Below are positions 1-46,744 of a stretch of DNA of 64,000 bases, piece after piece; the first letter of the stretch is position 1, and each line of letters starts with the position of its first letter. The position numbers were made by a program, and so were the translations under genes. The stretch comes from Oopsacas minuta (Eukaryota; Animalia; Porifera): contig JAKMXF010000301.1 in NCBI GenBank assembly GCA_024704765.1, forward strand, positions 155,807-219,806, read 5' to 3'. A model generated the notes under the pieces. The model was not told the origin of the DNA, did not search any database, and saw only the letters and a list, made by a program, of their open reading frames with translations.

Positions 1-70
1 TTTAGGAGTTTCAGGATTTTCACCACAAGCTAAAAGTTAACAACCGTAAGACAATTGTTTGCCACCCACA
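1..70 (+). repeat. Exact copy of 2826-2895; probable chimeric read segment
   Basis: TTTAGGAGTTTCAGG...GCCACCCACA is identical to 2826-2895 and is followed immediately by the Nextera mosaic end. Confidence 0.9.
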
Positions 71-89
71 AGATGTGTATAAGAGACAG
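71..89 (+). other. Nextera/Tn5 19-bp mosaic-end adapter (library contamination)
   Basis: Exact AGATGTGTATAAGAGACAG, with no Tn5/IS50 sequence nearby. Confidence 0.97.
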
Positions 90-1007: not shown

Positions 1008-3722
1008 AGATGTTAGCAGAAGAATACGAAGATACTAGAATCTTTTTTACACAAGATCTGTATCCAACAGCTGTCTTCCAATCTAAGATTACATGTCATG
1101 CCAAAAAGAACTTTCGTGTGAAGGCTTCACAATATGTAATCGGAGAGAAAACAAACTTTTCAAGGTAGATTTAAAAGAAGATTCTAGAACACAATGACCT
1201 TGTTCAGTTTTTTATTGTATGTTAACTTTCTAAAGATCAACTTATTTCATTATTCAAACCAGACACATAATTACTGAATGATAAGGGTTGCATTTTCGGC
1301 ACATGGATAAAATTGCGAGGGGAGCCAGTTTTGCAGCCCTGCTCTAAATATCATGGTGCTTATAGTGAGATAACTAATAATTATATATTATTCTACAAAA
1401 TCTTTTAACATGTGTGATTAGGTGATCAATAGTGGAAGTAATTGCGCTCATTAGAGGTTGTCTGCTCAGACCAAGTATCTCATATTATCAGACGCTACCA
1501 TGACAGTGCTGCACGTCCTAGAATCAACACTACATTCAAGTGTATCAAACACGAATATTTCTGGCCAAGGGATCAGCAAAGATGTTAGAAATTATGTAAG
1601 TTTTATTAATATTTACAATTGAAATGCTCATCCAACTCCAAGTAATCCAACTGAATTGATACCAATGTGTTATCTTCCTAGAGTTATTAACTGTCATAAA
1701 TTACTCGCTCTAACCCCGTTACAATATTGTATCAAAATAGTATCTGTTAGATATGCCAGCGTAGTTTTTCCTTTAATGAATTAGGAATCAAACTGTATAG
1801 AACCTGTTTGCTCGAGTTTTTGTGGCGAAAGTGCTGGATATAGTTGCATCTGTTATCACACACCTAACCTCAAGGGAAAAATCTGTTTGAGTTAGCGTCA
1901 ACTGCACATCGAAATAGTATATTATATTTCCAAGTCTTATTCTTTCATGAGCAACGGACCTACCGCACTAGTTGTGTCGCTCATGTCATAGGTGTGATCT
2001 GCACATTACTCATATTTTGCAAATACGTATGACATCTCAGACACTGTTTCTGGGTAATTCTTAGTCGAAACAAATCAATTAATTGTTGTTTTGAAATAAA
2101 TTAGAATCACCATGACTTCTGGACCCACCAAGCAGAATTAAAATGATTATATTATTCTTGAAGGGTTTTAAACTTAGATCTTGTAATGATTATTTTTGCT
2201 TTAGTCATTACGCAAGGTTTCAAATCTGTGGTATGCACACTTGTACATCACATCATTCATGTGTTTGTAGATTACGTAATACCTCTTTCTCCTTAGGTCC
2301 AATCTTGTCGTAATTGTCAATTGACTGCTTCACTACAGCCTCAGCCTCAAAGGAAACTGCAACCAATTCCTCCACCTGACCAACCCTGGAAGCACATCGG
2401 TATTGATCTGGTCTGTGATTTGTAGGAGAATACTGAAGGGTATAAACATAATTTGTCGCAAGTTGTTATTTGCCCAAATTCTGTGCAGTTCGCCCATTGA
2501 AAACCAAGACCAGTAGAGAGGTCTTGACTCAGCTGGAGAGCATATATTTTACTCTAGGAGTGCCTCAGATAATTCAACTATGATCAAGGACATGAGTTTG
2601 TCAGCAAGGTGTGTTACTTTTTTAATTTAAAGTAGCCTATATGTATGTAATTAACTAAATTGGGCGAGACTGGTCACGGTAGGTTGCTTGGAGAGGTCAA
2701 TTTAATTATAAATTAATATACAGTTGAACCTGCAGATAATCCTACATGTAAATAGTTTCGGATTTATATAGATATTCAACTATAGCTATTATAGTATTAG
2801 AATACCTGAATTTTTCAAATCTAAATTTAGGAGTTTCAGGATTTTCACCACAAGCTAAAAGTTAACAACCGTAAGACAATTGTTTGCCACCCACAAAGTA
2901 ACGAGCTTGTCGAAGCGCGCAATAAAATCATCAAAACATAAGTAGTATATAGATTACTAAATTCAACAAGTCATAATTGTTTTATTGCCTTGCCTACTTT
3001 AATAACTCCACAAAGTGCTAGTAGAAATAGGTACAGAGTGGCAGAGTAAATTATAAGCTGCTGTTCTAGCTGCTAACACTTGATGGAAGAAATCAACAGA
3101 CTACCCACCATTCTATCTGATGTACGGAAGAGAAGTTAATTACAGTCTTCTACTCGACCATTCTAACATGTTTCATTTTGAGGAGGAGGAAGAACTGAAC
3201 AATCTACAACTGCAAACTTCTAGCGATGAAGATGATGATGATACTTTCTCTCCAGTACTTGAAAATTCTGATGGATGGATAGAATCTTTGATGGAACTTC
3301 ATCCAGCACCAAATTACATGCACAAGAAAATATTCACAAGGGACAACAAACACAAAAATACCTATTCGATGATAGGGTTAACAAGAACAGGTAATCAATC
3401 ATGTAGCTATTAACTTTTGATAATCAATTACGTAATCACATTTCCCAGTACGAGCACAAAGCAAGGAGATCAGATATCGTTCTTAACATGCTAAAAGCAA
3501 AGAAAATTCATGGAACCAAGAAAGGAGGCAAATACATTGGTCCCATGACAGTATCTAAAGTGACAGAGAGTCATGCATTGGTTCTCAAGGAAGGTAGTGA
3601 TTCCAAATTAGGCAAGTATCCATTACACTTGACACGACAATATGTTCCGCGATCAGAAGCCAAATCGCCTAAACGTAAATGTACGGATGTCCCTACAGAT
3701 GTGGTGACTAAGAAATTCAAGG
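1008..3722 (+). pseudogene. Ginger A transposase exons (H2C2 zinc finger, DDE core, GPY/F region), with stops and frameshifts
   Basis: Manual translation of GT-AG separated blocks gives YHDSAARPRINTTF, CRNCQ..QPIPPPDQPWKHIGIDL, GVPQIIQ.DQGHEF, HPQSNELVEARNKIIK, AAVLAANT..KSTDYPPFYLMYGRE and KYIGPMTVSKV. Confidence 0.8.
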
Positions 3723-6261: not shown

Positions 6262-6391
6262 TTCGAAATCGCTCAAAGGCAAGGTACCTCGAACTTTGTG
6301 GGGACCTCTGCTCGAGGTTATTCAGCCAAGGCAATCCCTACCATGGCGAGCCCAGATAATGGAAACGCGACCTGCAATGGCACACCCCTAG
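6262..6391 (+). repeat. 130-nt conserved non-coding block, copy A (putative structured RNA)
   Basis: Gap-free alignment to 44565-44694 with about 17 mismatches counted by eye (~87% identity). It starts 14 nt after the last stop codon. Confidence 0.85.
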
Positions 6392-6446
6392 TCCTAGTGG
6401 CGAAAACAAGAAGTAATACCACGTAAATACACCAATTCAATTAACT

Positions 6447-6505
6447 CAAGTGTATTGCAAGAAAGGCAAAGGAACTGACGAGTCCAAGCCGGGGTGAAAC
6501 ACTTG
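6447..6505 (+). ncRNA. Type III hammerhead ribozyme fold, copy A (partly decayed)
   Basis: Stem III CAAGTG/CACTTG; GUA cleavage triplet (6452-6454); stem I TTGC/GGAA with one mismatch; core CTGACGA; stem II GTCC/GGGT (two G-U wobbles) closing loop AAGCCG; then GAAA. Confidence 0.7.
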
Positions 6506-10740: not shown

Positions 10741-10859
10741 CAGTAGAACTCGGATAAGACCTACCTCCTCAAGAAGTCTAAAAACATACGTACTATCCGA
10801 GTGCACATACTAAGCTGAAGTACGTCTTATCCAGGGTACGTGCCAACCGAGTTCTACTG
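10741..10859. mobile_element. 119-bp MITE with pogo-type ends
   Basis: 13-bp TIR CAGTAGAACTCGG / CCGAGTTCTACTG with TA on the left side, plus an inner inverted motif GGATAAGAC/GTCTTATCC. Confidence 0.7.
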
Positions 10860-11289
10860 AATATGACAATAAATATCAAATTTGTGCTGCTATACACTAC
10901 TGCGTCTCATTACAATCAGTCATCTTTCACCTTAAATAGTTAGACAGAAAAAACGAGCAAAAATTACCAATATTCACCCATTTGACCTTTAAGATGACCC
11001 CAGGTGGTGTTGACAATGGTGCCATTGAACTCGCTGTCCTCAAAATCCCTAGGTGGACCCGAGATCGTGTTTCTAGCCTTTCTAGAAGTCATTATAGCCT
11101 AGGACTCAAGTTAATCCTTCAGACCCAAGTTAAAAACCCCGAGCGTGGGAGGATTCAGTCCTTCTCTAAAGGAGTCTATGGCTTCTATACATTATATCTT
11201 TAGATTAATCAGGTCATTCATATTTTTATACTATACATCGTCAGTCAAATTATTCATAACCTAATTTCGAAATGTCCTCTGGAACTAGT

Positions 11290-12090: not shown

Positions 12091-12799
12091 GACTATGAAT
12101 GTTGCACTTCTTCCGAAATCTGGTAATGAGAGGAAGACACGACAACTTAGGTTCAAGGGACACGAATTGAATGAATGGAAGATCAATTAATAATCAATTA
12201 CCAATAAACAGAAAATGTGAGGTAGCATGAAATCAATGGATTCAACTAAGATGCAAATGTTTGTGTAAAATACGAAAATGGTATTCGATTTTGGATCCGT
12301 TGTGTTTTGTTGTTGTAAATTTTATTCATGTAAAATAGCAAGCAGCCTTTGGACACAATCTTTGGGCATGCTGTAAAACTGAATTTGGGTACTCTAGTTT
12401 CTCCACTTCAATGAAATAACGAGACTGTGACCTCACGTATTTGTACACCACATCCCTTTATTTTTCGATGCATCATGCTCGATCAACCAAACGGCGATGC
12501 AAAGAACGATCTTCTAGTATAATACTATCAACTTGATTTGAAGATGAGCTATTCCACTTAAATAAAGTGTTTTTACGGTGGAAATTATTGTATTATTGAC
12601 GCCCTACCCTCGATAAACACAAGATTTAAGAAGTTAGGAAATATCATCAGGATAATTTGCAAAAGCCTTAAAGACGAAGTTGATAAAAAATTTTATCCAC
12701 GAACACACGACTACTAAATATGCATGACCTGGTGGCTACTGAAGCAAGATATCTTGTGTAGAACAAGATTTGATACTCCTTACCTAGACATTCAACAAC

Positions 12800-14350: not shown

Positions 14351-17300
14351 CCTTCTCTTAGAAATGAATAAATGGCTAATTACTTGGAAGCATTCTAAGA
14401 AAATGGGCCTCCCAAACAAACACATTTGAAACTGTACTAAATACGTACAAATGCTGCTATTGCTGATCTAGCAGATGACTTAGTATGCGTATATGTGATT
14501 ATGTTTATGTTTGCCGTCATCATTAAATAGCAGCTAACCACAATACTGAAGACTGCAAAAGTTTTCCAGATTGATTCACCACACCCAATTACCCCATATT
14601 CAGTGAAATTTGTAGCTTTCAAACGTAGGTTTCCCCGCTGGTGGAAAAGTAAAAACTGCCCTCTCTTTTTTTATTTAATTCCTCGGCTGGTTCCGATCTG
14701 TAGTATAGAGTAGTCTATACCGCATCATATATCGTTCTGAGAACGAAGTTTGGCAAAACTAGCTCCGCGGTTAATATGTAAAGCACGTTTTGCCTTCGTC
14801 AGAATGTGAAACTAGTTTTAAATGTCGTACATGAATCTACAGTATCTGCTCTAAGTATTCAAAATTGCCAAAATCGTGTAATTAATAAAGCTACACTTCA
14901 GATTTCTTTGAATTATCTCTTCTCAGTAGTAAAATGTACAACGGAAAATGGTCCATACAAGCATGTTCGTTTATATGATCGACCCGCTCAACCATTCAGT
15001 TTTAACGACAATCGCTTTTCCTTCTTAGATCGTATAGAATGCCTAATTCATCAATCAGCAGGATTTCAGTATAGACTACTTGAGCTTACTAATCATGATG
15101 GTCTGAAATATCTCTCTCAGCTTGAATTGAATTCAATAATCACTGTTTTCGAAGGAAATGCAGAATTGATGAGGAAATTCTTTGAAGGACCAGCTCTACA
15201 GAATCAATTGGATCTTGGGTATTCTGTTGATGGTAGATGTTAGAGAGAACAATGCCCCTCTTGCAAGTTTAATAGGTCATCTATTCTTTACAAACTTGAA
15301 TTCACTGAAGCAGCTTATGAGTTTATCTATTGGATCTTCATGGGAGGGAGTGGCTTTCAAAGCGATTTTGAAACTATTTACGTTCCTCTTACCGTAGGAC
15401 ATATACGTTCTATGGAAAGGCGTATCCCCGTGCTATTTGTGGTCACTATATATTTGAATCAGCTGTTCTCTCACTGGTATTAGGAGCATTTTGGAGTAAT
15501 TTGAACGTTGAAGAACAAAAGGCCCTAAGAATTGGGTGTTTTAGAGACTAATAATCATGACATAAGTAATACTGCTGTTGAATTGGTTACATTGCCAAAG
15601 AAAGTAAGACACAACTTTCAATTGCATGTCATACATCAGTTCTATGGTTAAACTACGCTCCATATGTTTTCATTGTACAAGAGTTCGTACGCGCAGAGCG
15701 GACGAACAACTGGCCATTACAGTTTTCTGCAACTTAAAGCTTGTTAAATCTATTCGCTTTTATAGGATATAATAATTATGTGGACACCTGCCGTCATTAT
15801 CTCCAGGCAATAACTGCATTGGAAAAATCACCCAGATTTCTATCAAGAGTTCATGTCGGACAATCACACCATCAAGCGCACTAACAATAAATTGGTAGGT
15901 ATAATGGACTGATTCATCCATAGACCAAATTTTGATAAAGTCATTCAAAGGGTAGGAGTTCCATTGACAAAGGAATTACTGGAGAATGTCTTAAGCGCAT
16001 GGATTTAAATGTGTGCAGAACTTGATGGCCATTGTTGTTGTAGAGAGAATTCGAAAATAAATTTGCCCCAAACTACTACAATTGCGAGCTATGACCCGAC
16101 CTAATTGTAATAAGTAAAAGATGCTATTATGCTGGCACACAAAAAAACACAGCTAAATAATTCGTTATCGACAAAGTTGACACACTAGAACCTGCATCTA
16201 CCTAAATCACTACTAGGTGGCTCGGCTGTAAGAAAAATGAAAAGTTTAATGAGATCCACAAAAGATACCAGCCACCCAAATCGGTCTTTAATGTTTCACA
16301 GACAGTACAGATAAACGATCTCCTTTCTTGTACATTTGAAAGGAATGTAGCTTGTCAAATTATGCGTACCAAGAAAATTTTGTGATACCATGCGGTGAGG
16401 TTTGAGATGAAATATCTCAAGAATATTTCTTGTCATAGTGATCGATTTAAGGTATTATGTGTCGCGGAACAGATCTCCATCCGACTAGTGAATTCACTGA
16501 CAGAGAAGTGACTTTAAGCTTGGAAAACAAGTATAGGTAATTAGGACTTAAGTTAGGAGAGTAGGGGGATGATCAAGTTTTTACATCCTCATTTCATAGA
16601 TGTATGCGGCGATCTGTTTAGAACATCAAGATGTATTATCGGGTATGGGAAGCATATAATATGTTTGTAGGATCATTTGAATATTGGAAAAAATGTGTCA
16701 TCCATGGTCACTACAATTACTCTGGAGTGTACTAACTTCATCCGACAAAGTCTTGATATTTTATAGGAAAGATCCCATTGTCAAAATTCTGCAAACGTAT
16801 ATTCGGCATGTTACAGAGCTTCCAAATTAGGCAATTTTGGGAATAATGTGTCTAAACGAATCTGGTGACGTCATTTGGTCGTTAAAGGCAGATGCGGCCC
16901 TCGCCGCACCAATAATTCAGAATTTCTGTTATTATTTATAGTCAGATGTGATGAATGCCCCACCAATACGATGTACCTCGCCGTACAAATAATTTCTTGC
17001 TTCCTACGGCCCTGATTAAGCCAATTGGTACAACAGACTCCACATGTACAACTTCTTCTTCATTCGTAGTGCCGAAATTTAGCAAAATACAACATATATG
17101 CGTCTGAAGTGTGGGATACAGTGTGAGATTTTGTGGGAATAGGTGATCTGACTTGGATATTAACCCAAAATTAATGTGTGCATTCGATTTTAAACTATTT
17201 TCAACCTATAAATATGCTATTATTAGTTCTTAATGAACTTATAACATGTCTAACCTAGTCTCAAGCTTAGGCAATATTTGAGATTTGAAAACCTGAAAAC

Positions 17301-38300: not shown

Positions 38301-40758
38301 AGTTACGTAGGCTATGTATAAATATATATCTATATATGACCATCGTTATTTAAGGCCATGCTACTGACCAGAATTTAATAACCATGGATAACCTAAAGTC
38401 CATTAAATTTGATAGGCAATAATATTAATCAGGATAATACAAAATTGGTGCATTTTGGCCCGAATAAATGTAATATTGTTTGTTAATAATTGACACAAGC
38501 TATGTTACCCGACGAGGTCAAAATAACGTTATCTGATTATTAAAAATGGGAATATGTCGTGAAAATGTGCAATATTTTTAAGCTCGTCAAATTATCAATA
38601 GATATCGCTTCGTCGACTCTAGAATCAATACCAATTGATCCAAGGATGTTTTCATACAAAATCTCAAGCAATTGATAGGCCTGTCGCATAAGATTTTGAC
38701 CCGCGTAGGATTTTGACCCGCAAGTAGCAATTGCAAATCAAGTCATATCAACATTTCATCCCTAGTCACATAGTATTCGTATTTATACATGTGCGACTTC
38801 CTAAATGCATACACTAACATTTACTTTGTGTCTAGATTTCAACATCAACACTTATATTTACTTTTGACATTTTTCATTATGGATGCGACAGAGTATGAAG
38901 TAATTCGTGGATACCTCCAGACGAATATTATCCACCAGAAATCAAGAGTGATCGCTACAGAAAGAAGAATTTTGTCAGAAAGTGTAAGGGGATTTACTTT
39001 CAAGAGAATAAGCTAATGAAGGTATATTCCTGAATGATATTTTGATTTATACTTATTTCCGGGACATAATTAGAAATCTTGAGGCAACTACATATCTGCG
39101 AGGAGGCAGATATGTAGTTGCCTCATTAAATTTGCGTACCATAGGGAGATGAGAAGGGCGAAAACGCTAGGGGACTCCTCTGCCCCTCAATGCTACCTAC
39201 AACTTCTGAGTTTAGCTAAAATAATTTTCTTGTAGATTTTCAGAAAGAAAAATGGCTGCGTGAAATACTTGGAGATTCGACTAGTCTCAGAAATTGACAA
39301 CATTATCGGATTCTATCACAATGTCTCATCCTGGAATCAACACTACCATTGATGGAATCCGAAACTAATATGATTGGAATGGTATATACAATGATGTTGG
39401 ATCCTACGTGAGTTACTAAATTACGTATTTCTTTCATACATGATTTTCCAAGAAGATGTGGCCGAGAACACAGACTTACTAACCCTCCAGGGATCCCTGG
39501 ATTACAAATATTGAAAATCCAGGGATTTAGCAACGAAAATCTAGGGAAATTTGCAAATGGGGTTGGTATGTCTGAGAACAGCATGTAGTTTATAGTTTGA
39601 GGTTATTCACCTTGTAATTATTCTACTGTATACAGCTTTATTTGTGCGATTGTAAAATTAATATTGTGCGATCTGATGATATTTAGTATACCGGTGTACA
39701 ATTTTATCATATGGAAATCTATTTGTACGGTGCAACCAACCATGTATCTAACAACTAATGATCCTTGCGGTAGTTGGTAATTGGGATAGGTAGTGGGAGT
39801 ATGTCACATAAACATATTTGCCAACCTGAGTGAAGAAAAAGCGGGACGGAATGCTAATTTAGCGGGACATCTGGGACGTAGCAAATTACATTAGACTGGA
39901 CTACAAACTGACAATTAAATCATTTCCCGTTCTAGATCCGAACTTGCCATGACTGTCAAACTTCTGCTGCTCTACCTCCTCAGCCACAACGAGAGCTTCA
40001 ACCTATTCCTCCTCCTGAAGAACCATGGTGTCATTGTGGAATTGATCTCATATGCAATATGTCTCGCACTGTACTTGGATTTCAGCACAATCTTATCATC
40101 GTGTGCTACCTGAGTAAATTTGTAATTGTTCGACCACTCAAGACTAAAACTTCTAAAGAAATATTGGATTGTTTACAAGAAATTTATCTCTCATTCGGCG
40201 TACCTAACATCCTCCAACATGAACAGGGAACAGAATTCTCAAGCAAGGTAACCCATATTTTATGCATACTCGAGATTAGTAATAGTAAATACACCAAGTA
40301 AATTATTCCAGATACACAATACACTTACTATATTGGATATACGTACGTAACATGTTGCATTGTCAATTGTCAGTGCATTGCTTCAATATATACCCTGGTA
40401 AGAAATTGTGCACCTTGGTGGCCATATTTAAGAACCGTGTGGAAAATTGGATTATAATTTATGTTAAATACTAATAAATAAGAATTTACGAATTAATGCT
40501 ACTACCTTCGGATGGAAATTTTACCTTATTAATCGTTAAGTCTTTCTAACTATTGTTGAACAAGACTAAGCACATGCGCGTAGTAGATTGTTATCGTTCT
40601 CTTATTTACTTTCAAAATAGGAATTTCAGGAATTTCACAAGATAAATGTCAACACCAGAAGAACCACAGCACACCACCCACAAAGTAACGGACTTGTTGA
40701 GTCACACAACAGAATATTGAAAACATGAGTATTAATACTAATTATAAATATATATATA

Positions 40759-42112
40759 CAGTGCCGGTCAAAAAGAATTACTCAAATGAATGTATACAGT
40801 ATAGTAAATGTCAAATTGTATACACTGACCAGATAGTTGAATTCTTGCGAAACCATACTCAGCATATGTATTTTGACAAGTAACATACCAACACAGCTAA
40901 TCCATTCATTATATTTGCACAACTTACAGTTTTTATTTTGTATTCTTTTTTTTTCCAATTTATCTGTTTTTATCGAATTTTCAATGCCTTCTAAACTCCG
41001 AATTTCCATTGAAAATCGAGCCAACCTGATCCTACTTTCAGAAAGTGGCCATACTCAGAGGGAGGTAGCTAAAATGGTTGGGTGTAGCCAAAAAAGTGTA
41101 GCCGAGATCCTTAAGAAACACAGGCTGACTGGCACGGTAAGAGACCTCGCTATTTCGGGTAGGCCTCGTGTCACAACCAAAAGGCAAGACAATTTATTGG
41201 TCAGAAAATGCAAAAAGGATCGATTTAAGACTGCTACTCAGATCAAAGCTGAAGTGTTATCAGAATGTTCGATAAAACTTTCCACTTCAACAGTTCAGAG
41301 AAGGTTACGAGGGGCTGGACTGTTCGGACGAAAACCGCGAAGGAAGCCCCGCCTTACTACCAAGCACAAAAGAGACCGACTTTCCTTCGCAAGATCGCAC
41401 AAGAATTGGAATACTGAAGAATGGGCAAGAGTTGTGTTCAGTGACGAATCTAGGTTCCTTCTGTATACTAATGACGGGAGAGCCTACGTCAGGAGGATGA
41501 AAGGGGAGGAGTTCTCAGAGAGGTGTCTTCAAAAAACTTGCAAGTTTGGTGGAGGTGGCATCATGGTTTGGGGATGCTTTTGCTGGAGTGGCGTAGGACT
41601 CTTGTGGAAAGTATCTGGGAACCTCAAGACAAATTCCTACATTGATATATTGGAAAATGCACTAATCTCAAGCGTTGATTTGCATTCTCTACATTCTGAC
41701 TGGACCTTTCAGCAAGACAACGCCCCATGCCATAAGTCAAAGGGTACTAAGCAATGGTTTGGTGAGCAAAAAATAGAGGTTATGAATTGGCCTGCTTAGT
41801 CACCTGATCCAAATCCGATTGAGAATCTCTGGGATCACATTTCCCTCAGAATTCAAGAGAAAAGCCCATCCAACCACTCAGAGTTGTGGAATGCCATATT
41901 AAGCACTTGGGATAGCATTGACATTAACAGGCGCCATACTCTAATTGAGAGTATGCCGCAAAGATGTAAAGCTGTAATTCAAGCAAGAGGAGGTACTACT
42001 AAATACTAACAACAATTTACTTGATGATAATAAAGCATTATTGTTAAAATCAGTCATAGATATAAGAATTTGGGGTAAATTTATTCTGAGCAATTCTTTT
42101 TGACCGGCACTG
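40759..42112 (+). mobile_element. Tc1 (DD34E) element, 1354 bp
   Basis: 26-bp TIR CAGTGCCGGTCAAAAAGAATT(A/G)CTCA, flanked by TA. Confidence 0.95.
40984..42009 (+). pseudogene. Tc1 transposase, full length except for one premature stop
   Basis: MPSKLRIS..GRPRVT..FSDESRF..GIMVWG..FQQDNAPCH..WPA*SPDPNPIENLW..RGGTTKY*. TAG at 41797-41799 replaces the usual Gln of WPAQSPD. Confidence 0.92.
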
Positions 42113-43286
42113 TATATTGTAAGCCTTACATACGTTTAATACACGTCGTTTATAATTAGATAGCTTTGAATCAATTTAGCACTTTTACAAATAGAAAAAT
42201 CAACAAGATGCAATCTGATGGGGACACTGAATGGACAGAGAAATTACAGACAGCAGTACTTAGCAGCAAATACTCAAACCAAAATCTCTACAAGCTACAC
42301 ACTCATTTATCTCATGTTTGGGAGAGACTTTGATTCATCTAACCTTCTCAATCTTATCACTTCTCCAACTAACCCCGGATTACTAACCGAAGCTGATATC
42401 TCAGAGGCAGAAGTATCAGAAGATGAGAATATTCAAATGGATGCAAACGAACCACGCCCATTTGACTTTCCTATAATTGATAACGAATGGATAGAAAATC
42501 TTTCCTCTACACGTAAAGCTGACAGGATGACTGGTATTGAAAACATCAAGGCAAGTCAGAAAGTTCAAACGAAAACATATGACAGCAAAGTTAAACACAA
42601 CAGGTAAGAAATAACGAAACACATTCTTGTGTGATGTAACATGTTGGAATTTCACACATCATCTCTTACTAAAATTAAATTAAATTCACTGACTGTTGTA
42701 TAATCAGGTAAATATGAAATAGTCTTGAATCGGAACTAATTTATTGTTTCCTCAATTATATGAATTCTTAAATTCCAAAACACTTACTTTAGTTATATAA
42801 TTAGCATCATTACAAACTGTACGTAATTGGCACATTATTTTCTTTGTATAATCATTGTGTAAACTTAGATCAGAATTTGTGGAAGGAGATGAAGTACTTG
42901 TACATAATATAAAGAAAGCCAAGCGACTCACAGGAACAAAAGATGCAAAGAAATATTTGGGACCATATACGATAGAGGAAGTTAAACCAAGCCACCTAGT
43001 TGCTCACAAAGACCCAGATAGCAAAACAACAAAATTACCTATCCATCTATCAAGAAAATATCATTCTCGCATGAACGAAAAACGGCAGGTTCGAACGAAG
43101 ACAGGCAAATCAAAGAAGCCCAAAAGATCTTGCAAATTCCCTTCTAGCGGTAAATATATTAGCGAGACAATATTGTACTGAACTATAACTAATTGACTCA
43201 GCCCATGATTAAGTACATATAAACTAGTTGTGTTCTGTATTGATTTGATTAATACGTAATAGCAATCCTACATTTCACATATTTAT

Positions 43287-44541
43287 TTGTATTTAGATTC
43301 TTTGGATGATATATTGAACCTGGATACCATGGAAGAAACATTTGAAACACCGCAACAACACTCAATCTATGAAAATATCGACTCTGAGCTACTTCAATTG
43401 AAACCTCGAATACTATCAGCTCTTGTCAATAACACATACTTAACCCAACTACATGAGAAACTCGCTACAAAAGCTGCATCTCTAACTTCATTGAATTTAC
43501 TATATTCTTACCATCCACCCAACGAACTAAATTTTGAGGTTAAGGAGAAACTTGCTGTATCAGCCGGTGATTGGTACGCAGAATATCGTTCCTCCTATCC
43601 TACTGAAATACCTGAAGAGACACGAAGAGATCTGGACTATCCAATTGCTGTTCTATTACCAGTAATAATTGAGTTGATATTCCCAACTGAGCAAGTTCAT
43701 GAGATCATTGAAATACCAGAACAATCTATACAAAATGCATCAGATCTTATCCCATATCCTAAATGGGGAGGAGAGTATAACAACATCGTGCAATCTAACA
43801 CCTGTTCTATCGACAATATATTGGCTATTCTTAGTTCGAATAAAGCAACCATCATAGACTCACTGAAGTTAATCGGAAGTACACATATTGAAGCTAAATT
43901 CCACTACATATTCCAATTGGCTGCTAATTGTGAATTTGAGAAACTTCGAGAATATGTTGCTACTGAAATTGGGCTTGAAGTTATTTATGATTCCTCAGGA
44001 TTGATGCGGTCTTACGATTTCTTTGGATCAGAGGGTAACACCATCAAATATTTACGAACAGAGATTTGTGTAACGACAAATATTTCACTATCTTCCAATG
44101 CCACCAATGCACCAATATCTTTGAGACACAATCCATGATTAGTAATATAGGAGGCGTTATTACAAACCTGGAATCATCTGTTAATCGAAGTCTCGTTCCT
44201 TTTAAATGCAAGTCTTGTGGATCAACTACTGCTGTCTTAGAGAGGATATCTGGTCAATTCAAGTCAATACCTGTCATGCTAACAATTGAAATCGGACATC
44301 TACCCGAATTGCCAGACATTTTTGCAGTGATATTGACAAACACTTTACCATCAGTCACTACCAACTTGCTGGCTTTAGTACATTGAGTATTAGACACTTC
44401 TATTCAATCCTTTACCAAAACGGGCAATTCTATAAATATGACGGAATGAGAGAACCAATTATCCATTTTGGGACTGTGACACTTTCATCGGATCACTCAA
44501 TACTGTATTCTACCTCTTGCACTCTTCTGACTAATTCTTAA
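43287..44541 (+). pseudogene. USP/UCH-like cysteine protease domain at the 3' end of the Ginger B ORF (frameshifted)
   Basis: Cys-box-like SNTCSIDNILAIL, CHQC and CKSC zinc-ribbon pairs, PVMLTIEI, and His-box-like RHFYSILYQNGQFYKYDGM, in USP order. Confidence 0.55.
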
Positions 44542-44564
44542 CGATTCACGACTCTTTTCCATCA

Positions 44565-44694
44565 TTCGAAAGCGCTCAAAGACAAGGTACATCGAACCTT
44601 GTGGGGACCTCTGCCCGAGGTTATTCAGGCAACGCAATCCCTATCATGATGAGCCCAGACAATGGAAACGCGACCTGCAACAATACATCCCCAG
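44565..44694 (+). repeat. 130-nt conserved non-coding block, copy B
   Basis: Homologous to 6262-6391; starts ~24 nt after the last stop codon. Confidence 0.85.
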
Positions 44695-44714
44695 TGACGA
44701 ATATCATCACTCTA

Positions 44715-44782
44715 CCATCTAAGTATTTTGCGAGAAAGGCAGCGCAACTGACGAGTCTACGCCGAGACGAAATACAGCATGG
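44715..44782 (+). ncRNA. Type III hammerhead ribozyme, copy B (canonical core)
   Basis: GTA-T-T | stem I TTGCG/CGCAA with loop AGAAAGGCAG | CTGACGA | stem II GTCT/AGAC with loop ACGCCG | GAAA-TAC. Stem III extends through CCAT-CT/AG-ATGG. Predicted cleavage after 44727 (AUU). Confidence 0.9.
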
Positions 44783-46744
44783 AATCAGATACAAGCGAGT
44801 TTCTTATCTATTTGTTATTTTTTAATGTCTCCTTGTCTGTGGCCGTTCGGGAACCGTTAGCTCCTCGTGTGTCTGTTAAATTACGATTTATTGTACATAA
44901 TCGTTTATGTTGCAGCTTACAGTCAAATTTGGTGTGATCGCAATCACATTAAACTCGCTCAAACACTGCACACATAAACAAAGTGAGGTTAACGTTAAAA
45001 GTTTAGCGTTAGGGGGTGGCTGTAAGGGGAAGGAGGAGGCCACCGCAGCTGACTTGTTTTGTTTATAGAAATCTAGTGTTTTCCAGGAGTATGCAGCGTG
45101 CCAGAGGCTCGCGGTTTTCACCACAACTCTATATGTGTATCAACATTATACCAAGCTCCCGTAACAAATGCATAGTCTACGCTTGTCCAATAGATGAACA
45201 TATTTCAGTGGTATATTCCTTAAAGCTTGTTAGAAAGTATAGAGAAATGGGCAAAGATGAACTCGCCTACAATTCGTACTTAAGATATTCCGAATATTGA
45301 TTATCACGCTAATGCTTGTAATATTTTTATTATTTGATAGAATATATTGCAATATATAGATTGACATGTTAAATTATATTATTTATTATGAGTTATTAAA
45401 TACAATTATCAAATACCTACCACCTTCTGTCCAAGTAATATAATTATAAAAAATTTATATACACTGTCCATTTTTGGCATTTTGGATAATAATGTACATT
45501 TGTGATACGTAGAGGGAACATAGTTTATATGTTATCAAACAAATTCACTACTTTCTAGAATCCAACTCTAAATTGACTTATTTATTCAGTTACGTATACG
45601 TATAGCTAATCTAAAATTGAATTACATTACATATATTTAGTGGTAATTACGTAATGATAGTGTATGGAATTCGAAAAAGTCAAATGACAGAGAAGTAAGA
45701 TTACTTTAGGGTCAAAATCCTACGACAATAATACATTATATGCGGGTCAGAATCCTACGACAATATATGCGGGTCAAAATCCTTCGCATATATTACATCG
45801 TAGGATTTTGACCCGCACCATGGATATGCTACTAGGATTTTGTATTGCGGGTCAAAATCCTACGCAACAGGTCTCTGGTTCCAAAGTTATAGTAGTGACC
45901 ATGGATGACATTTTTCTGCTAATAATCGCTTATAATGTTATGGCCTTTCATCTTGCAAACATATTGTATAGCCCGACTTCCAATACCCTGATAATACATT
46001 TTGATATGATGTATCCAAGGATTATTGTACAGTCATCAATAATACCATATATAGTCATTTTCAAGATTGCATCATAATTTTCAGCGATGTCATATCATGT
46101 ATTATTATCGGTGAACGGGAAGTCGGGTTTATATCTTATGTTTGGAAGATTATCGACCATAAAAATATATGTGGTCAGGCTATAGTTGAATATTACTAGA
46201 AATGTGTCATTTATGGTCACTACAATAACTCTGGAACCAGAGAACTTTATTATGGCAATTTTTGGACATATTGTATGAAAGTCTCTATGGATAATTTGAT
46301 AGAGCTTGAAAAATGGCGTATTATTACAACATCTTCCCAGTTTGGCCAATCAAATAAAGTAATTTCGATCTGGGACTTGTCGGATGTCATAGCTTGAATT
46401 AATATTAATCATAGCCTACTAAACATAAGGCCATTTTTACTGAGCCAAATGCGCTTGGACAAGGATAAGATGAAGTCATTTTCTTATACACCCATAACAC
46501 AACTCAACAAGATTTCTCATCAGAGATCACATACATTTATCTTAGCATACTTTTGAATGTTGAACTCGAATCTGCAATGAGAATTTCTCTAGCACGTCTA
46601 GTTATTCTGAATCCAAGATCCATTTATCAATAGTATAGTATTACCTAGTTACTAAATTGCTATATGAGCATACCTATTTTGATTCAATTATCTGGAATAT
46701 AAATGATTTTACTTATTTGAATTCAAGCAAATCAAATTATAAAC

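Follow-up and report, generated by a model that had tools for sequence, protein, structure and literature searches.

A 64,000-nucleotide stretch of the Oopsacas minuta genome (contig JAKMXF010000301.1, positions 155,807 to 219,806; hereafter the window) carries a type III hammerhead motif on the + strand at 44715-44782 (core 44720-44778), with predicted cleavage between 44727 and 44728. The motif lies between the stop codon and the 3' end of a Ginger1-like DNA transposon (copy B, 38682-45869, + strand). It is a real type III hammerhead motif, a known ribozyme class in a new genetic context. Eukaryotic genomic hammerheads have so far been tied to retroelements, satellites and viroid-like RNAs, and in animals they are almost always of type I. 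The finding widens these habitats to type III hammerheads, apparently under selection, in the 3' untranslated regions (UTRs) of cut-and-paste transposons from two superfamilies and several sponge species. We put at about 0.5 the probability that the motif acts in cis in the transcribed 3' UTR of the transposase gene, where ribozyme-made 3' ends would set or limit transposase output.

The hammerhead motif and its position in copy B

The anatomy of the motif was read directly in the sequence. The 5' strand of helix III is GUAU (G44723-U44726), in which U44726 is U16.1, and H17 is U44727. Helix I pairs UUGCG (44728-32) with CGCAA (44743-47), perfectly at five of five positions, around a 10-nt loop 1, AGAAAGGCAG. 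The core CUGACGA (44748-54) leads into helix II, where GUCU (44755-58) and AGAC (44765-68) form four perfect pairs out of four, G10.1-C11.1 among them, around loop 2, ACGCCG. GAAA follows at 44769-72, then UAC, and beyond an internal loop helix III is extended by CCAU (44715-18) paired with AUGG (44779-82). Positions 44726-27, 44748-54 and 44769-72 hold the hammerhead residues C3 U4 G5 A6 N7 G8 A9, G12 A13 A14, A15.1-U16.1 and H17. The topology is that of three helices, with helix III open (four pairs and the extension) and helices I (five pairs) and II (four pairs) closed by loops. The GGC of loop 1 (44738-40) is complementary to the GCC of loop 2 (44761-63). An earlier reading made from the letters alone (the sequence-only reading) had described a full core, perfect stems I and II, an extended stem III and the GGC/GCC complementarity, and each of these is present.

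On the sense strand of copy B, the hammerhead starts 178 nt beyond the stop codon and stops ~1.09 kb short of the 3' end of the element, in agreement with the ~180 nt after the stop and ~1.1 kb inside the terminal inverted repeat given previously. The proposed cut-and-paste Ginger host was likewise recovered, with 23-nt inverted ends and a Gypsy-type integrase (rve, H2C2, GPY/F) whose gene contains introns. A second Ginger copy in the window, copy A, carries a hammerhead at 6447-6505 (+ strand), ~200 nt after its stop codon, which confirms the homologous fold noted at the same relative position. The copy A hammerhead has two mismatches in helix I and a G-U at 10.1-11.1; its sister copies (L063-L065) have intact hammerheads.

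The covariance model of Rfam family RF00008 (Hammerhead_3) aligns to the window copy over all 54 model positions and scores it at 18.7 bits (cmscan; E = 0.17 in a 301-nt search), and it scores copy A at 23.8 bits (75.7 bits with model R1). The Rfam gathering score of RF00008 is 48.5 bits, a threshold reached nowhere in the window and by no copy genome-wide. RF00008 scoring counts the long loop 1 as an insertion. Over the whole 61-Mb genome RF00008 gave 19 matches, the best at 36.9 bits (E = 5.9e-5), and most of them, including all top-scoring ones, belong to the groups of the window hammerhead's family. A plain pattern consisting of the core, helix II and GAAAC matched the genome 23 times, compared with 0 times for the reversed pattern. 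The minimum-energy fold of the isolated window copy (59-68 nt) is not a hammerhead (-11.5 kcal/mol, against -6.7 kcal/mol for the hammerhead). The canonical ribozyme described in the sequence-only reading therefore holds as a motif, complete in core and helices, and does not hold as the minimum-energy fold of the isolated 59-68 nt. Taken alone, the window copy is unconvincing, and the case rests on its relatives.

Relatives in the genome, in other assemblies and in a second superfamily

The O. minuta genome repeats the 241 nt surrounding the motif at least 40 times, at 83-97% identity. Homology of 30 fetched copies runs from at least 1.5 kb upstream, across the motif, to about window position 45870, so that the motif belongs to a long repeated element and does not form a small repeat of its own. 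All 30 copies have it within the element, with an intact core and perfect helices I and II in 17 and damage in the other 13. The sequence-only reading had considered that most copies might lack the motif and that it might occur as an independent retrozyme-like repeat; most copies instead carry it within long elements. A family model built on 17 sequences extended the covariance search to at least 105 matches in the 61-Mb genome, and intact hammerheads were also found at related loci of other assemblies.

The U at position 17, named as H17 in the sequence-only reading, is present and is an allowed residue, but it is private to the window copy and not typical of the family: the other 29 of the 30 fetched copies have A. 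Sequencing contigs (kind unrecorded, apparently DNA) all have A at the equivalent of 44727, and among them the region around the hammerhead is also present in a second organism (run X5).

A single ribozyme could also serve to cut multimeric transcripts, derived from tandem or excised circular elements, into monomers that then circularise. The type III hammerheads of plant long terminal repeat (LTR) retrozymes do so (PMC4918200, PMC7761336), and the integrases of Ginger are related to those of Gypsy elements, by which retrozymes are mobilised (PMC2836005). For the sponge elements this is highly improbable: they are 5-7 kb long and coding, each has one hammerhead that is placed outside the terminal repeats, a tandem arrangement was seen at 0 of 30 loci, and the Mutator-like host described below has no link to retroelements.

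The hammerheads fall into several groups. Group A reads CAAGUGUA followed by UUGCG, and group B is the window type. Groups C and C2 have the core CUGAGGA, and group D combines a GUC cleavage triplet with the helix I UUAAG/CUUGA and the core CUGAUGA. Group F is an orphan variant from the pattern search (L087:1491-1559, - strand), with the helix I UCAGG/CCUGA and the helix II GCCU/AGGC. In this orphan, helices I and II are fully compensated and the GGC/GCC loops are retained. It is not beside the conserved Ginger block described below, and it is flanked by 50-nt direct repeats 349 nt apart.

Pairs were counted on a family-level alignment of 12 sequences that represent groups A, B, C, D and F and two other assemblies; an alignment of 17 sequences agrees with the counts. 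Pairing reaches 98% in helix I, 100% in helix II and 98% in the inner four pairs of helix III (47/48 cells). Both sides have changed in 9 of the 19 pairs tested, and overall pairing is 88%, compared with 27-41% in controls with slid partners. N7 (C, G or U) is the one core residue that differs between groups, and position 17 can be A, C or U, all of it within what the hammerhead consensus allows. Across the diverged groups the helices are, on this alignment evidence, under structural constraint. The GGC/GCC loop complementarity is kept in groups A, B, C, F, G and H, and group D does not fit. No pair of the GGC/GCC loop pairing has changed on both sides in the 12-sequence alignment. Paired loop changes in two loci (L029 and L030) were rejected as covariation, since they sit at a CpG site and in decayed copies. 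The loop I-II contact that the sequence-only reading proposed is thus matched by conserved complementarity in most groups, and by compensatory change in none.

A chance match to a short consensus would be in keeping with the score and E value of the window copy and with its minimum-energy fold. Relatives scoring up to 36.9 bits, the pattern control of 23 against 0 and the covariation of the stems place the motif above chance, and hammerheads at the same position in other assemblies further speak against coincidence. We regard this explanation as refuted.

Loci in three other ENA assemblies were reached through proteins related to the integrase exon. Host genes beside the Ginger loci of two assemblies are 90% and 65% identical to those of O. 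minuta, indicating that these assemblies, in both of which intact hammerheads follow Ginger genes, represent different species, and the flanks of one locus (L094) have no long match in O. minuta. L094 encodes an intact hammerhead ~110 nt after an open reading frame (ORF) with an OTU domain and 3' of an rve exon; OTU and rve both exceed their Pfam cut-offs, the conserved block is absent, and inverted ends were not found by the repeat search. Another locus (L095) has an intact hammerhead together with the block. A third (L099) also has both, and its block (L099:10816-10946) is 92% identical to that of the window, with proteins ~50-65% identical. The hammerhead of L092 is decayed. Scans of metagenomes with the hammerhead pattern and the core of the block gave no match. 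We conclude that the hammerhead is a feature of several Ginger lineages, not of all.

Group D hammerheads are associated with a transposase of a second superfamily. The D-type hammerhead (L061:1001-1059, the same as L091:1472-1530; L091:1467-1535 with the wider span) lies ~205 nt downstream of an ORF with a PHD finger at its end. Pfam Mutator PF20700 matches L091:17-457 at 47.4 bits, against a cut-off of 26.5, on the same strand and ~1 kb upstream of the hammerhead. The Mutator-like ORFs occupy L091:17-1267, and two homologues (P0007 and P0019) contain the full Mutator domain. There are ~29 D copies, most of which share sequence only from ~100 nt upstream of the hammerhead onward, which suggests that most are deletion derivatives. 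The D-type 3' UTR is unusually structured (z = -4.2), and a 12-pair hairpin ends a few nt before the ribozyme. Groups D and C have AAGGCG in loop 1 in common, which suggests, although it does not prove, a common origin of their hammerheads rather than convergence. The idea that the ribozyme is a relic of retroelement ancestry is weakened, since a related hammerhead follows a Mutator-like transposase without kinship to retroelements.

The occurrence of related hammerheads in Ginger elements, a Mutator-like element and the orphan L087 indicates that the module moves between contexts. It may then be a functionless hitchhiker, for example of retrozyme- or viroid-like origin, that was captured once or a few times and persists because master copies are young and the module is short. 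The hammerhead and the block are separable, as L094 has only the hammerhead and two other loci (L093 and L102) only the block, and single copies decay freely, with 13 of 30 damaged. Neutral persistence leaves unexplained why a compensated hammerhead remains alignable amid non-coding DNA that is not, in elements whose proteins are 40-65% identical, and why core variation is restricted to N7. We consider a functionless passenger an unlikely explanation.

The conserved block and the predicted fate of the transcript

A conserved non-coding block of ~131-135 nt (44565-44695, + strand) separates the stop codon of copy B from the hammerhead, and homology identifies the same block in copy A (6262-6392, + strand). 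It starts ~25 nt after the Ginger stop codon. Between Ginger lineages and assemblies its identity is 85-95%, against 40-65% for their proteins, so that the ~135-nt block is more conserved than the transposase protein. Alignment between the Ginger families A, B, C, C2 and E is possible for the block and the hammerhead alone; it fails for the upstream and downstream DNA and for the spacer between these two, which varies in both length and sequence. The block occurs with or without a hammerhead, making the two separable modules. A coding role for the block was rejected: its variable sites favour no codon phase, and the ratio of synonymous to nonsynonymous changes is ~1:2 whichever of the three frames is read. 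Searches of the block found no Rfam family at E up to 10 and no tRNA-like fold.

Downstream of the hammerhead, CAAGCGAGTT (44792-44801, + strand; CAAGTGAGTT or CAGGTGAGTT in relatives) resembles a 5' splice site. This CAAG(U/C)GAGUU motif, ~15 nt past the hammerhead, is the only conserved downstream stretch and is common to four B-like lineages in three assemblies. It could be splice-donor-like or U1-binding-like, in which case cleavage might compete with splicing or with U1 binding. The motif also stands just after the hammerheads of L092, L095 and L099. An acceptor-like site, TTGCAG, is located at 44911-44916 in the window, ~120 nt after the donor-like motif. Among nine representatives, the first AAUAAA or AUUAAA hexamer, where there is one, occurs 166-497 nt after the hammerhead, and one of the nine, C2, has none within 900 nt.

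The position, copy number, conservation and covariation of the motif are observations; transcription of the transposase gene, cleavage of the RNA and any effect on the mRNA are what we infer. In the favoured mechanism, transcription of the gene would allow the ribozyme to fold and the RNA to be cut after position 17, ~110-205 nt beyond the stop codon and ahead of any AAUAAA or AUUAAA hexamer. The coding RNA would end in a 2',3'-cyclic phosphate and would lack a poly(A) tail, because hexamers, where there are any, occur only after the hammerhead. Its last ~150 nt would be the conserved block in Ginger elements or a strongly folded hairpin region in the Mutator-like element. The sponge elements would offer a natural case of a protein-coding mRNA whose polyadenylation may be replaced or opposed by ribozyme cleavage.

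A broader and rather doubtful version holds that at least two transposon superfamilies of glass sponges use an exchangeable 3' module, consisting of a hammerhead-made 3' end and an upstream element that would replace the stabilising or export role of poly(A). The upstream element would be the block in Ginger and long hairpins in the Mutator-like element. If true, this would be a ribozyme-based expression strategy not known for eukaryotic DNA transposons.

Several observations weigh against a role in making 3' ends, besides the sub-threshold model scores and the competing fold of the isolated window copy. Two loci of one assembly, L093 (block 12353-12490) and L102 (block 10810-10940), keep the block and have the hammerhead only as a remnant, and five others (L096-L098, L100 and L101) have neither. 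The existence of several loci without an intact motif implies that the ribozyme is dispensable for some Ginger lineages. Horizontal transfer of the elements could inflate the apparent conservation. For the block, RNAalifold found compensatory change in 0 of 33 pairs, and its folding energy is not unusual (z-scores of -0.3 to -0.7); a protective 3' structure is unsupported for the Ginger block, whose fold is unproven. The splice-donor-like motif suggests that the transcript may continue past the hammerhead and be spliced. The absence of AAUAAA and AUUAAA within 250 nt before the hammerhead (0 of 9 representatives) is statistically weak.

The remnants in L093 and L102 stand directly after the block and read GACGAGC...(G/T)AAA(C/T) (L093:12490-12525 and L102:10945-10985). 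They resemble a hammerhead from which helix I and the cleavage site have disappeared.

Read-through transcripts across inverted ends trigger RNA interference against Tc1 in Caenorhabditis elegans. The ribozyme may similarly insulate its element, severing the coding RNA from the 3' subterminal and inverted repeats and from flanking DNA, so that end-paired double-stranded RNA and the resulting silencing are averted and the effect on poly(A) is secondary. In two unrelated superfamilies, which have nothing but their terminal-inverted-repeat architecture in common, the hammerhead invariably separates the gene from the 3' end, 0.56-1.1 kb in from that end. The region downstream cannot be aligned between families, which argues that it is not itself the selected product. 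Insulation is nevertheless improbable as the main role: the inverted ends are short, comprising 23 nt and the subterminal repeats, and some Ginger lineages do without a ribozyme.

The host element and comparison with known systems

Copy B spans 7188 bp including a nested insertion, and its limits were set by inverted ends and by the homology limit of at least 30 copies. The 5' end (38682-38721, + strand; pattern search) begins with a terminal inverted repeat starting TGTCG and includes a subterminal GGATTTTGACCCGC repeat. The 3' end (45707-45869, + strand; pattern search) consists of subterminal repeats and the 3' terminal inverted repeat (45847-45869, ending GCAACA). It reads ...GCGGGTCAAAATCCTACGCAACA, and its reverse complement matches at 38682 with three mismatches; shuffled sequence gave no such match. 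The inverted ends start TGTCG and TGTTG, agree at 20 of 23 positions and have TGT..ACA termini. They conform to the TGTNR start of Ginger1 terminal repeats (~40-270 bp), with the exact repeat at the short end of the published range. A 14-nt subterminal repeat occurs seven times near the ends of copy B. In some B copies (L007 and L021), a ~35-nt subterminal repeat forms arrays immediately internal to the 3' inverted repeat.

The flanks of copy B are GGCC and GGTC, which fit the 4-bp length of a Ginger1 target site, differ by one mismatch and are neither CCGG nor CCGT. The 3' flank is GNNC in 29 of 30 copies, followed by T in most, and the 5' flank, read for the window copy only, is A-GGCC. The target thus looks like AGNNCT, not the CCGG or CCGT published for Ginger1.

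The integrase gene is split by introns. An exon at 39936-40298 (+ strand; translation and protein match) encodes the end of a zinc finger (CHDCQ) and the start of the catalytic core. At 100% identity, its product matches an O. minuta protein at NCBI that bears Pfam rve PF00665, and relatives carry Integrase_H2C2. The window copy reads HEQG where L094 has HDQG. A further exon (40621-40725, + strand) contains the motif HPQSNGLVE, with a Pfam rve_3 match at E = 8e-4 that is below the curated cut-off, and is also present in copy A at 2828-2947. The GPY/F-type integrase C-terminus (..EGDEVLV..KYLGPYTI..) was identified by translation at 42852-43178 (+ strand) and is 41% identical to its counterpart in copy A at 3476-3682. 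Together these provide the H2C2 finger, DDE core and GPY/F of a Ginger1 integrase; the YPYY motif is not established. A Tc1/mariner element (40754-42117, + strand) is nested in the Ginger gene and interrupts it. It has inverted ends of 41-42 nt (40754-40794 and 42076-42117) and a transposase ORF (40837-41799) with HTH_Tnp_Tc3_2 and DDE_3 domains. Copy B is a dead element, its gene broken by this insertion.

The C-terminal protease-like domain of copy B (43263-44541, + strand) is covered by three overlapping frames, the last of which stops at 44539-44541, the same place as in homologues from other assemblies. No Pfam match to OTU or Ulp1 was found in this domain, and the C-terminal domains had no match in protein atlas look-ups or in a PDB sequence search. 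A structural model of the domain from a relative has, at low confidence (mean pLDDT 54), only USP-fold proteases as its top structural matches, with USPL1 first. A USP-fold domain, if real, would add to OTU and Ulp1 a third type of ubiquitin/SUMO protease carried by a Ginger transposase. The domain (also P0088, P0089 and P0093) contains an NTC motif, two CxxC pairs and an HFY..YKYDG motif.

Two other repeats were noted in the window. A 71-nt stretch occurs at window positions 1-71 and 2826-2896, 100% identical and 2825 nt apart, and includes part of the copy A integrase exon. Its possible origins are duplication, nested insertion with rearrangement, and an artefact of assembly. An imperfect palindrome of ~380 nt (45869-46246; 66% self-complementary) adjoins the Ginger 3' end of copy B, and its arms have a further match at 16625-16726, which makes it probable that the palindrome is an additional small inverted-repeat element.

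Full-text literature searches linking hammerheads to Ginger, to DNA transposons, to inverted repeats with a transposase or to sponges did not find the pairing, in line with the sequence-only reading, which knew of no description of it, and there is no mention of a ribozyme in the O. minuta genome paper. The Ginger1 group of Bao, Kapitonov and Jurka (2010, PMC2836005) resembles copy B in its TGTNR ends, its Gypsy-type integrase with H2C2, DDE and GPY/F, its introns and its length of 5-7 kb; it also has an extra C-terminal domain, a cysteine protease, where copy B has a protease-like one. The Ginger1 paper describes no ribozyme, and it reports CCGG or CCGT targets, in contrast to the GNNC seen here. 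Its C-terminal domains are OTU or Ulp1, whereas that of lineage B is modelled as USP-fold-like.

MALAT1 and mascRNA offer a parallel in which a 3' end is made by cleavage at a structured RNA and a conserved element is located at the new end. RNase P does the cutting there, and the upstream element forms a proven triple helix, whereas the sponge elements have a predicted autocatalytic cut and a block without demonstrated structure. The rodent Clec2 hammerhead (Martick et al.) is likewise found in the 3' UTR of a protein-coding mRNA, before the poly(A) signal, and is expected to lower expression by removing the tail. Clec2 ribozymes belong to host genes and are split by hundreds of nt, whereas the sponge hammerhead is contiguous and resides in multi-copy transposons.

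The hammerheads of Penelope-like elements and of metazoan non-LTR retrozymes are also borne by mobile elements in animals, near the 3' or terminal region. They are of type I, often dimers, and belong to retroelements (PMC7229834, bioRxiv 10.64898/2026.07.22.740005), whereas those described here are of type III and belong to terminal-inverted-repeat DNA transposons. Type III hammerheads are known mainly from plants and circular RNA agents, and type I from metazoans (PMC7761336). According to a 2020 review and a 2026 preprint, type III belongs to plants, to LTR retrozymes and to circular RNA agents, and type I is the form of animals and Penelope-like elements. A retrozyme is non-coding and has a hammerhead in each terminal or tandem repeat, whereas there is one hammerhead per coding element of 5-7 kb in the sponge. 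The type III hammerheads of viroids, plant virus satellites and plant LTR retrozymes are similar to the sponge motif in their core, open helix III, closed loops that might touch and length of 59 nt. The sponge hammerheads differ from the plant type in their animal host, their single occurrence in each coding DNA transposon, a loop 1 of 10-11 nt and a score below the gathering threshold, and they bear on how type III hammerheads spread between mobile elements.

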